DNA of 64,000 nucleotides from Haplodiscus bocki (lineage: Eukaryota), in the NCBI GenBank assembly GCA_965655095.1, contig OZ296657.1:45384001-45448000 (forward strand), in the 5' to 3' direction. Of the stretch, positions 44,201 through 48,205 are shown one piece after another; within the stretch, counting starts at the first letter, position 1, and every line of letters begins with the position of its first letter. The notes below the pieces were generated by a model. That model did no database searches, was not told the origin of the DNA, and saw only the letters and a program-made list of their open reading frames with translations. Both the position numbers and the translations under genes were made by a program.

Positions 44201-45456
44201 GGAATTTTTCAAAGAAATGGATGACTTTTTAGCAGCGAGAATTCCGTCTACGAAATTCGTAAATAAATAATTTGGCGGGCTTTAAATTACTAATTTAGGA
44301 ATGTATTCCGTATTTTGATCATGCACTGACTCATTTATGTTTTTTAAAAGTCACCGATCGGTGTAAAACTTCCCATTTAGATGTCGGAAGACGAGAGTTG
44401 CATGGAGCAGTTGGAGGCGGTGGCGGCTGAGGAAGATACGATGAACTGCCGCCTCCAATGGAGATCATCGCATGGTGGGCAGTTTGTGAATCTCATTGAA
44501 CAGCATCCGCGGAAAGCCTCTTCTACCTCCACCTCTATCCACTCGTGGACTACTAGTACTCAGTATTCTTTGTGAGTATTCTAACCCATCAATTTTTTAT
44601 GAATACGAGGCATAATTCAGTCAATTCACACTGAATTGAATTATGTATATTGATCGAGTCTAGCAAGTTTTTGGGCTAAAAAGTTCATTATCGGTGCAAT
44701 GCAGTAATCTAGTCCCTTGAAAGCTACTTTGACTTACAGTGGAGGTCCTTTACTCTCTTTCACTTGCCCAACGCCCGTGTGTCATTGGATTTTACCCAAA
44801 TCGCACAAATTGGTGTTTTCATTGCTGAAGTTTTGTTAGAAAGTTACCGCATCCGGTACAACTACCGAGCGAAAAACCTTGAAAATTAAATTCATTCTTA
44901 ATGAATTGATTATTCCTGTGTTCCATTTTCGCTTTCCTGGTTGTGCATCATTCCTTGTTCACTCATTCCTGCTTTCATTTCACTCGCTTTCCAATCCATC
45001 GTTGGAACAAACGAGAACCAATTAGAGTTCTCGGCTCTTTTCTTATCCACTGACGTCATTTCTATTCTGAATAACAACAACTGCAGCTTATATAGTGAAC
45101 AAAATATGCTGTTTTGACTTGTTCAGCTCCTCTCTTTGTATCAATCTCTACTAAAGACGACGTCACGTCGAGAATCCGAGCTGTTCAACGTTGATTTGAG
45201 CAAAATGACGTTCTCAGTTACTATAATATAGTAACTGCTTCTGTTTCTGCTTGTTCATTCGTTTGGAGCGAGAAGAAGGCTGCCCGTGAAAGTGCCTCGA
45301 GTCTAGAAATCTCAAAATTCGACCGCGCAATGAGAGTCTGGGAAGTTGTCTGAAGTATATCGAACTCATGGGGTGCGAAGAAAGTGTTTGAGGCGCTAGG
45401 TCTTCGCAGAATGTTAAACCTCCTACGTTGAGTTTTTTGAAAAAATCTCCGAAAGT

Positions 45457-45486
45457 ATCGCTTCTCGGCCTTTTGGCTAAGATCAA
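45457..45486 (+). ncRNA. U2: U2 snRNA, 5' fragment (nt 1-30), interrupted by retrotransposon
   Basis: ATCGCTTCTCGGCCTTTTGGCTAAGATCAA matches the conserved metazoan U2 5' end exactly. Confidence 0.95.
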
Positions 45487-47629
45487 CAACTTTGTGCCTC
45501 GTTTCCTAGAATTTCTGCACCGAATGGCGGCCATAGGCGAAACGCCAGATGTCTGGAGGAGATATAACACGATGCTCCTCTTCAAGAAACCGAGCGAATA
45601 TGTCCCGGGTCAAGAAAAGGTCCTGAAAAACTTCCGCCCCATTGCCCTATCGAATGTTTCATACAAACTCCTGGCAGCAATGCTCTGCAAACGTTTGGCA
45701 AAATGGTTGGAAGCCAATAAAGGGATTTCTTATTCGCAACGAGCAGTATTCTCAAGAAGAGGTGTACAGGAGAATACCTTAACAGTTGCCGAGGCACTGC
45801 GGGCCAAAAAGACAGTCATCTATCTGGACCTCAGCGATGCTTTTAACACGGCTGAACACCCCCTACTTCTCGAAGCCCTCAGACAATCCGGATGCCCGAA
45901 GTGGATAATGGACATCATCGCGTCGGTATACCGGCACTGCATAACCTCACCTGTAGACCTGTTTGGAAAGAAACTTGCTGGTGACGTACCTGTTTCTCGC
46001 GGGGTACGACAAGGATGTCCTCTCAGTTCACTACTCTTCAACCTTGTACTCGACCCAGTGTTGCAAGCTGCCTCTGGTCCAGGATCCTTTTGCCTAGGAT
46101 ATATGGACGATATTGCAATCATCGTCGATAACCCAGAAGACGTACCGCAAACACTAAGCCGAACAGTTGAAGTCGCCCAATCGCTAGGTTTCTCATTCAA
46201 CATCTCCAAATGTGGAATTGCCAATTACTCAAAGGAAGTCATGATAAATGCCTCACCCATACCGAAAGTAACTGACAGCAGAGCCTACAAATATCTCGGC
46301 ACAGAAACCTTTCCCAATACAACCGGTGGTCTTGATGCCTGTTTGCAGACAACATGGGAACTCGCAGAAAAGATAGAAGTGTCCGAGCTTACTCCCATGC
46401 AGAAAGTCCATGCTATACGAACAAAGGTGCTGCCCATGATGTATCACCTGGTCGAAAACTCACACACCACTCAAGAGAAGCTGCACAACATCAACAAGAA
46501 TCTACGAAAAATGACCAAACGACTGTGTTATCTCCCAGAACGAGCCTGTAACGCTTATGTCCATCTTCACCGCATGTATGGAGGGCCGGGCATACCTGAT
46601 TTTGTTGTCATGAAAGCAAGCTTGACCCTCAACGCGTTTATGAGAACCATGAATTTGAAGGATGACCTCGGTGTTAAGGTCAGACGGCTGATCCTCAAAA
46701 ATCAAACCTTACCTGAGCTCATAGAGACAATCAACAATGGAGGTCCAAGGGTGGGACTTTGCTTGCTTGCGAGAGAAGTGTGCGCAGCAAAGACACGAAT
46801 ACAGAAGTTCTTGAATAAAGACCTGACGTATCAGTTTCACGAATCAGGCGCTCTCGTGATGTACATCGACAACATGCTGTACAAGGAACCGGACCCCACT
46901 CTCAAACAATTAATCCGGAAACAAGGCCTCAAGAATCTCTGCAGCGCATCTAACCAAGGACGGTATTGGCAAGCACTCAGTACGAACCCATTCACCAGCA
47001 AGCTAATGTACAGTTTCCACACGAGAATGTGCGATTGGCGACACACGCATACAGCAAGATTGAATCTTACCCCCCTCAAAGCAAGCTTCAATTGGAGTAA
47101 CCGACGCGATGAAGCCTGCCGAAGATGCCAATTGGGTCGCGAAACTTTAAATCATGTCTTGAACAATTGCCCAGCCCATCGACGAGAAATAATACAACGT
47201 CATAACAACATTAGGGACAACTTTATTGAAAAACTCCCGAAAAACTTGAAGATTTTTCGCGAGCAACGTTTTGGAAACCTCCAGCCCGATGTAATTGTGG
47301 AAGATACCAAGAACAACAAAGCTTACATACTCGACGTTAAAGTATCTTCCGAGGATACATGCCAGTTCGCGGAAAATGAGTATCGCGTAAAAGAGAAGTA
47401 TGAACCCTTGCGACGAGCATATGAAATCAGAGGTACTCCGGCAACAACTTCTACAATACAGCTTGGCTGCCTCGGCTCCATAGCAAGGTCCTCTTGCAAC
47501 ATGATCCAGAGACTTCTCGGCAACAAGAGAAATGCAAGACGCCTCATTATTGAGTTCTCCTGTTACACCACACATACAGCCCGAAATCTCACAGTTCAAT
47601 TCTTCAGCGGAAAGGTGCAGAACTCGTAG
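45487..47629 (+). CDS. Reverse transcriptase + CCHC knuckle + restriction-like endonuclease, N-terminally truncated
   Basis: Uninterrupted frame with NFRPIAL, YLDLSDAF, GVRQGCPLSSLLF, YMDD, YKYLG, GGPGIPD, CRRCQLGRETLNHVLNNC, RHNNI, QPDVIV..ILDVKV, KEKYEPL. The first ~20 aa of the track ORF (from 45428) are flanking DNA and U2 sequence. Confidence 0.92.
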
Positions 47630-48033
47630 CACAAAACGGAACAAAACTCTTTCTGTACACCATGTTAGCTCACAGTGCGCGCAACCAAACAGTATTTCAA
47701 TTTACTGGCCAAAGGCAGACACAATAGCAATCTTTCAGAAGGGAGCCCTGTCTTTGAAGTTCCATCCCAAAAAAAAAGAGAAGAAAAATCCACAAAATCA
47801 ACGCACCCGAATTCCGCAAATACTTTGCAAAACACGGGCCCCCTGTTGGTTAGGTATGTGGATGGGGTAGCATTGGATGGGGGTGGCTGCCCCACCCGCA
47901 CGTGGCTCAAAACAAAAAAAAAACACTCTTTTTCTGATTTCTCGCTACTATTTGTAAATAGTTATCTATTTGGACACCGTCTGAGGTGACATTTGACCAT
48001 GTAATATCATTATTTATGCTAATTCAAATCTTT
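45487..48033 (+). mobile_element. 5'-truncated RLE-type non-LTR retrotransposon inserted in U2 snRNA (Utopia-like)
   Basis: Flanked by U2 nt 1-30 on the left and by U2 resuming at TATCTGTTCTT on the right. Single RT+RLE ORF and about 400 nt 3' UTR. No TSD or poly(A) seen. Confidence 0.9.
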
Positions 48034-48189
48034 TATCTGTTCTTGTCAGCTTAATATCTGGCATGCTAGGCACCGCCTAGCTCCAATATTAAACTGATTT
48101 TTGATCCTAGATCTTGACAAAGAAGCTTGCTTCAGTCGGATCACGGATTGTCCCGGTCTTACACTACCGCCGGGTACGGTCCATTCCCC
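48034..48189 (+). ncRNA. U2: U2 snRNA, 3' fragment
   Basis: TATCTGTTCTT; stem IIa TGTCAG/CTGGCA with pairing preserved; stem IIb GCTAGGC-ACC-GCCTAGC; Sm site ATTTTTG (about 48097); GAAGCTTGCTTC in stem III; CCCGGT-CTTACACT-ACCGCCGGG stem IV. Confidence 0.93.
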
Positions 48190-48192
48190 AAT

Positions 48193-48205
48193 GTTTGAAA
48201 CTTAG
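48193..48205 (+). terminator. snRNA 3' box
   Basis: GTTTGAAACTTAG just after the U2 3' end resembles the metazoan GTTT-N-AAA-NN-AG 3'-box consensus. Confidence 0.55.

Follow-up and report, generated by a model that had tools for sequence, protein, structure and literature searches.

What has split a U2 small nuclear RNA (snRNA) gene of Haplodiscus bocki in two, how recently did it arrive, and can it still move? The gene lies at positions 45457-48205 of a 64,000-nucleotide (nt) stretch of contig OZ296657.1 (assembly GCA_965655095.1, forward strand, 45,384,001 to 45,448,000), which is referred to here, at its full length, as the window. The intervening sequence is very probably a recent, dead-on-arrival insertion of a Utopia-type retrotransposon without long terminal repeats (non-LTR), of the R2-like kind that carries a restriction-like endonuclease (RLE), into a U2 gene of the host's live type. 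The window copy is thus a new copy of a known family, Utopia, the U2-targeting non-LTR retrotransposons of the NeSL clade described by Kojima and Jurka (2015, PMC4640811).

The edges of the insertion emerge from comparison with an intact U2 gene of the same genome (L002, at C10:44.86 Mb). The original prediction described U2 nt 1-30, 2.55 kb of element, and then the rest of U2. The size of the element stands, but the upstream piece of the gene comprises only nt 1-29 (45457-45485), as the match ends where the window has A at 45486 and the host's intact U2 carries T. U2 sequence restarts with ATCTGTTCTT at 48035, at nt 38/39, and reaches nt 189 at about 48186. The downstream piece does retain the Sm site (AUUUUUG, 48097-48103) and is followed by a 3'-box-like motif, as predicted, but nt 30-37, including the branch-point-recognition GUAGUA, are deleted at the locus. 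The motif, GTTTGAAACTTAG at 48193-48205, is also kept in the intact paralogue, and we take it to be a 3' box from its likeness to the vertebrate snRNA consensus. U2 nt 39-189 of the split gene are identical to those of the paralogue at 151 of 151 positions. The upstream (promoter) region, 45200-45450, matches at 242/250 positions (96.8%), and the flanks overall are 92-97% identical, that is, 3-8% different. The Rfam U2 model matches 48006-48189 with 120.4 bits (E 7.7e-24), while the two intact genes of the genome score 175 bits; the lower score reflects the forced alignment of model positions 1-37 to the AT-rich tail of the element. That this tail might mimic U2 was considered and rejected, the alignment to U2 positions 1-37 being AT-rich with about 6 matches in 15, as judged by eye.

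Between the two pieces lies the element itself (45486-48034), some 2.55 kb long and oriented like U2. Its coding capacity is contained in one uninterrupted frame of 733 codons (45428-47629), the sole open reading frame (ORF) of more than 350 amino acids in the window. The extension of this frame into U2 is a coincidence of the 5' join, and 713 codons plus the stop codon (45488-47629) follow the U2 piece. The frame aligns to residues 341-1051 of a 1052-residue relative (P0001) with 83% identity, and to residues 339-1056 of a frame that runs uninterrupted for 1056 codons on C279, another contig of the genome. The prediction of a frame of over 700 codons free of stops therefore holds, and the frame carries the YMDD, CCHC and PD..D-x-K motifs, but it is incomplete, corresponding to residues ~343-1056 of the entire protein, which in full-length relatives is 1050-1090 residues long.

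Three conserved regions can be recognised in the frame. A reverse transcriptase (RT) domain, RVT_1, occupies 45614-46303 (Pfam, residues 43-272, E 2.4e-33), with YMDD at 46100-46111. A CCHC zinc knuckle of the form C-x2-C-x8-H-x4-C (47117-47170) stands ahead of the nuclease and aligns to the corresponding motif of a solved R2 protein, and the RLE core P-D...D-V-K (47285-47341), of PD-(D/E)xK type, aligns to the nuclease region of R2. Neither the CCHC nor the PD..D-x-K columns vary across an alignment of 12 family proteins, and of the family positions that are invariant or nearly so, 71 fall within the window frame and all 71 are retained. With a family profile, solved R2 proteins are matched from end to end (484 bits, E 1e-143), whereas L1 ORF2 is matched in its RT only (190 bits). 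No Pfam match to an apurinic/apyrimidinic endonuclease (APE) domain (PF03372) is found in the window ORF or in full-length relatives, and RNase H and Ulp1 protease have no Pfam match in the full-length proteins of the family. The lack of an APE match, the whole-length likeness to R2 and the CCHC and PD..D-x-K motifs together make this an element of the R2-like RLE non-LTR type. With these domains and a 3' junction at the position published for Utopia, U2 nt 39 (PMC4640811), the predicted identity as a Utopia-like RT-RLE element is borne out.

The part that is missing bears on mobility. Sister copies and relatives of full length carry three Cys/His fingers within their first ~120 residues, with RVT_1 in the middle of the protein. 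The AlphaFold model shows three fingers followed by a linker of low confidence (residues 123-236), and a Foldseek search with this model matches only zinc-finger proteins and, weakly, R2Tg. The window copy starts at residue ~343 of ~1056, without the start codon, the three zinc fingers or the linker, and the N-terminal coding part of the element is found nowhere else in the window. Lacking a start codon and the N-terminal fingers, the copy is unable to move by itself; it is non-autonomous and was dead on arrival. The suggestion that it is possibly still active is therefore not upheld for this copy, although its lineage may be active, judging by the uninterrupted 1056-codon frame of the sister copy on C279.

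At its 3' end (48034-48036) the element abuts U2 nt 38/39 (TCTGTTCTT...). The 5' join lies within a microhomology: U2 nt 23-28 (AAGATC, 45479-45484) are identical to six nucleotides of the element's internal sequence. The full-length C279 copy has AAGATCGACAACTTTG at the internal point that corresponds to the join, where the window has U2...AAGATCAACAACTTTG. As AAGATC is common to U2 and the element, the true 5' junction may fall anywhere in 45479-45486, and at least 8 target bases have been lost. Two full-length copies (L051 and L030) are preceded by U2 nt 1 to ~34 with a few substitutions, so that a full insertion removes only some 3-4 target bases and leaves no target duplication. Arthropod Utopia behaves alike, full insertion deleting only a few bases without duplicating the target (PMC4640811).

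Is the choice of U2 characteristic of the family, or an accident of this locus? A census of U2 loci, by DNA search with U2 nt 39-189 and scoring of all 30 candidates in the assembly, finds four U2 bodies of the live type, 97-100% identical. Two belong to intact genes, at C10:44.86 Mb and C5:44.65 Mb, and two are occupied, one in the window and one at C10:45.13 Mb; 2 of the 4 live-type loci are thus taken. The second occupied gene (C10:45127038-45129089, minus strand, L052/L005), which lies about 300 kb upstream of the window, is interrupted at the same site as the window gene. Its element belongs to a different Utopia lineage, with 43% protein identity and an open frame of 734 codons, and its U2 body is identical to the intact gene at 151 of 151 positions. 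The remaining full-length U2 bodies share 85-91% identity with the live type; most of them lie in an array at C10:20.77-20.98 Mb, and every one follows an element tail that ends at nt 38/39. These bodies, in the array and on C279, C2945 and C4377 (L007-L023), resemble a distinct U2 variant that is probably dead, and the uninterrupted full-length frame of C279 sits in a body of this array type.

An element tail stands ahead of nt 38/39 in at least 20 U2 bodies of the genome. At C8:36.26 Mb a U2 body has a 5' part that is unoccupied but mutated, and at C8:39.97 Mb a lone copy of the element is followed by a 42-nt U2 fragment with the same junction. The genome has 73 protein matches, nearly all of them within U2 arrays or beside U2 loci, and every readable 3' end of a family copy adjoins U2, the readable ends excluding those of C4:8.82 Mb, C10:21.37 Mb and C10:32.85 Mb (which are 3'-incomplete), C4:102.2 Mb and two array copies. 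Chance insertion was rejected on the strength of this common junction. The genome holds many deeply diverged Utopia lineages confined to its U2 genes, and the predicted site-specific family is confirmed by the survey of copies and 3' junctions. A further U2-derived feature is found at C10:21199046-21199187 (L027), where tandem units of ~35 nt each contain the first ~31 bases of U2 and a run of T; it recalls the U2-derived satellite described for the YURE elements of Ciona. According to the run metadata, the stretch occurs in two samples of one study and, to a small extent, in a coral metagenome; none of these is an RNA run.

The relationships of the family were examined in a careful maximum-likelihood tree spanning the RT to the nuclease (35 rows, 784 columns), with references taken from a metagenome scan and labelled by their flanking genes. 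The window clade and the clade of L079 are joined with a bootstrap of 99 and a Shimodaira-Hasegawa-like approximate likelihood ratio (SH-aLRT) of 98, and the window element, L078 and L079 are all flanked by U2. Elements flanked by 28S form a separate clade with support of 100/99. A quick tree under a mixture model gives the same grouping with a lower support of 88. Nematode, scorpion and stick-insect proteins are also found in the L079 clade. L078 (JAAUXW010375180.1) and L079 (Ga0157366_1003186) are Utopia-type elements from metagenomes that end exactly at U2 nt 39, with identities of 42% and 26%, respectively. The tight grouping of L078 with the lineage at C10:45.13 Mb makes it probable that the L078 sample contains a close relative of the host. 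Three further metagenomic elements, L082, L083 and L084, are of R2 type, with open frames of 1037-1268 codons and 28S ribosomal RNA (rRNA) on both sides. No protein named as Utopia, NeSL or R2 came out of a profile search of a word-indexed protein database, and cluster look-ups gave as named relatives only hypothetical proteins of Plectus sambesii and Centruroides sculpturatus.

The age of the insertion can be judged from what has been preserved. The nearest copies at the DNA level, on C279 and at C10:20.98 Mb, are only 90% and 87% identical, so that no burst of the window lineage is visible. Between the window and C279 copies, synonymous divergence (dS) is 0.35 and the ratio of nonsynonymous to synonymous divergence (dN/dS) 0.18, which indicates that the two diverged as functioning lineages and not by decay; the window copy represents, on these sequences, a separate lineage. 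In a neutral simulation with substitutions only, the probability that a frame of 713 codons stays open falls from 0.19 at 2% divergence to 0.09 at 3% and 0.02 at 5%. The retention of all 71 residues, the open frame and a perfect U2 body in spite of the 3-8% divergence of its flanks point to a recent insertion into a gene that had been under selection until then, in agreement with the youth originally proposed.

Several considerations weigh against this reading. The RT phylogeny separates a U2-flanked clade from the 28S-flanked one, but this placement rests on references labelled by their flanks and not on curated Repbase entries for Utopia, NeSL, HERO and R4. Gene conversion among U2 paralogues could keep the U2 body identical even if the insertion were not young, and the nuclease and priming steps proposed for the element are carried over from R2 biochemistry. 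One alternative is that the family belongs to the R2 clade or another RLE lineage that gained its U2 specificity independently, and is Utopia-like in function but not Utopia by descent. The end-to-end alignment with solved R2 proteins would fit such an origin, as would a feature search in which the nearest cluster is of R2 type. Utopia monophyly received a bootstrap of only 60% in the original paper (PMC4640811), and Keno shows that the same U2 site has been reached twice. Nevertheless, both trees unite the window clade with another U2-flanked element, apart from the 28S-flanked clade, and at least 150 cluster representatives score 531-1137 bits on the family profile, above the score of R2 proteins. 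A Myb domain, the hallmark of R2 according to Hassan et al. (2026, PMC13188248), has no Pfam match at E<=0.1 in six full-length proteins, and the AlphaFold model, of low confidence at residues 123-236, likewise shows none. Independent acquisition is accordingly an unlikely account.

A second alternative holds that the copy is old, and that its open frame and perfect U2 body were kept by gene conversion or by selection on a domesticated RT-nuclease protein. Concerted evolution would fit the pattern seen among the C10 U2 paralogues, identical bodies within flanks diverged by 3-8%, and a frame open over 713 codons is also what selection would leave. Conversion of the element, however, would call for a donor, and no near-identical copy exists, the best being 90% identical; a domesticated protein would have to do without the family start codon and DNA-binding N-terminus. 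Moreover, the second live-type U2 gene, 300 kb away, combines a different lineage with a perfect U2 body, which fits recent insertions into genes under selection, and great age is therefore very improbable. As to continued mobility of the copy, whether by its own means from an internal start or in trans by way of an intact 3' untranslated region (UTR), we regard it as scarcely credible: although RT, CCHC, nuclease and 3' UTR are intact and the UTR contains a core common to several lineages, the zinc-finger N-terminus conserved in all full-length relatives is absent, and the assembly contains no daughter copies. A recent, dead-on-arrival Utopia insertion remains the best explanation of the locus.

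By analogy with R2, such an insertion would begin with recognition of U2 DNA by the family protein, whose PD-(D/E)xK nuclease would nick U2 at nt 38/39 on the bottom strand. Reverse transcription would then be primed by this nick and proceed from the 3' UTR of the element RNA (target-primed reverse transcription), an RNA presumably co-transcribed from the U2 promoter. Synthesis of the complementary DNA (cDNA), or its joining, would have halted about 1 kb short of the 5' end, and the cDNA end would have been joined to upstream U2 DNA through the 6-nt AAGATC microhomology, with the deletion of at least U2 nt 30-37. The outcome would be the structure now present, in which RT, CCHC finger, nuclease and 3' UTR are kept and the start codon and N-terminal zinc fingers are gone.

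The 3' UTR (47630-48034), which has no poly(A) tail, has a history of its own. Similarity of the ORF to that of the C279 copy (L011) stops ~30 nt before the stop codon, and from ~40 nt past it the UTR body (47670-48030) is closest, at 83-84% identity, to the UTRs of L010 and L013 (C10:20.948 and 20.909 Mb), whose ORF remnants show only 47-48% protein identity. The window element thus reads as a mosaic, with the ORF of one lineage and the UTR of another and a switch near the stop codon. Within this UTR, a conserved core with a predicted 17-base-pair (bp) hairpin lies at 47838-47900, and the AT-rich terminal tail (47990-48034) is conserved between lineages. The core, ~65 nt long, is found again, with scores of 82-102 bits, in seven distinct copies that span several protein lineages down to 43% identity; an RNA model built on it is clear in these seven and faint in three more, and so is not family-wide.

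The predicted hairpin shows three compensatory pairs, with 29 of 500 shuffles reaching the observed score and slid partners pairing far worse, so that covariation lends weak support to a paired structure at 47838-47900. Folding of the whole 3' UTR against shuffles gives no excess stability (z -0.22), conservation being limited to the local hairpin. By analogy with the 3' UTR of R2, the hairpin is a candidate RNA handle for the reverse transcriptase. Rfam searches of the full-length C279 copy and of the C10:13.3 Mb copy's 5' UTR gave neither a ribozyme nor any other family. In the C279 copy the 5' leader is broken, relative to the sister copy L030, by a tRNA-like stretch and a run of T on the reverse strand of L029, ~70-170 nt upstream of the ORF; this may be an insertion of a short interspersed element (SINE), and ARAGORN calls no tRNA in it.

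It is conceivable, if on balance doubtful, that the diverged Utopia lineages of this genome exchange 3'-UTR modules around the common hairpin and so cross-mobilise each other and truncated copies, while the host appears to rely on two intact U2 genes, with half of its live-type loci freshly disrupted. If true, the common hairpin would be an RNA handle for target-primed reverse transcription that serves lineages down to 43% protein identity. The locus itself adds to the record of the oldest known lineage of site-specific retrotransposons a well-documented example, probably from an animal phylum new to it, with both junctions placed to the base and a microhomology-mediated 5' join. The window copy is an inactive fragment and in itself no tool. 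The genome, however, offers a natural set for the study of R2-like recognition of a target outside ribosomal DNA (rDNA), with its many diverged lineages, a single fixed target and several full-length frames that are free of interruptions, and it could show how a host tolerates the loss of most of its U2 copies.

Among known systems, NeSL-1 and YURE belong to the same broad clade as Utopia (PMC4640811). NeSL-1 differs in its spliced-leader target and its Ulp1-like protease, the window family being found in U2 and having no Pfam protease match, and YURE has only a preference for U2-derived satellites, which is not seen here. Keno, of the Tx1 group, has the same 3' flanking U2 sequence but employs an APE, in contrast to the C-terminal restriction-like nuclease of the window element; identity with Keno was rejected since neither the window ORF nor its full-length relatives have an N-terminal APE. 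The R2 proteins (9dou, 9nl3, 8gh6) are homologous over their full length, with the same domain order, and are likewise presumed to use target-primed reverse transcription from a structured 3' UTR. Identity with R2 was nonetheless rejected: the insertion lies in U2 and not at the conserved site in 28S rDNA, a Myb domain is not detected, and the 28S-flanked relatives form another clade.

Utopia itself differs in details. The RNase H of oomycete Utopia and the Ulp1 protease of Utopia-1_TSP are absent here, the window copy is 5'-truncated, and several lineages of this genome have a 3'-UTR core in common. The host is apparently outside the published range of Utopia, as Xenacoelomorpha are absent from the 2015 host list (PMC4640811), and no paper in the collection searched combines 'Utopia' and 'acoel'. 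In other respects the likeness is close. The element has a single ORF with N-terminal zinc fingers, RT, CCHC and PD..D/ExK nuclease, a 3' junction at U2 nt 38/39, a variable 5' junction and no target-site duplication, and its deeply diverged, low-copy lineages occur only in U2 genes, of which disrupted copies outnumber intact ones, as in Phytophthora and Nasonia. The four traits reported for Utopia, namely the junction, the ZF-RT-ZF-RLE (ZF, zinc finger) protein, several low-copy lineages inside U2 genes and the excess of disrupted over intact U2 (PMC4640811), are all four present in the family of this genome.

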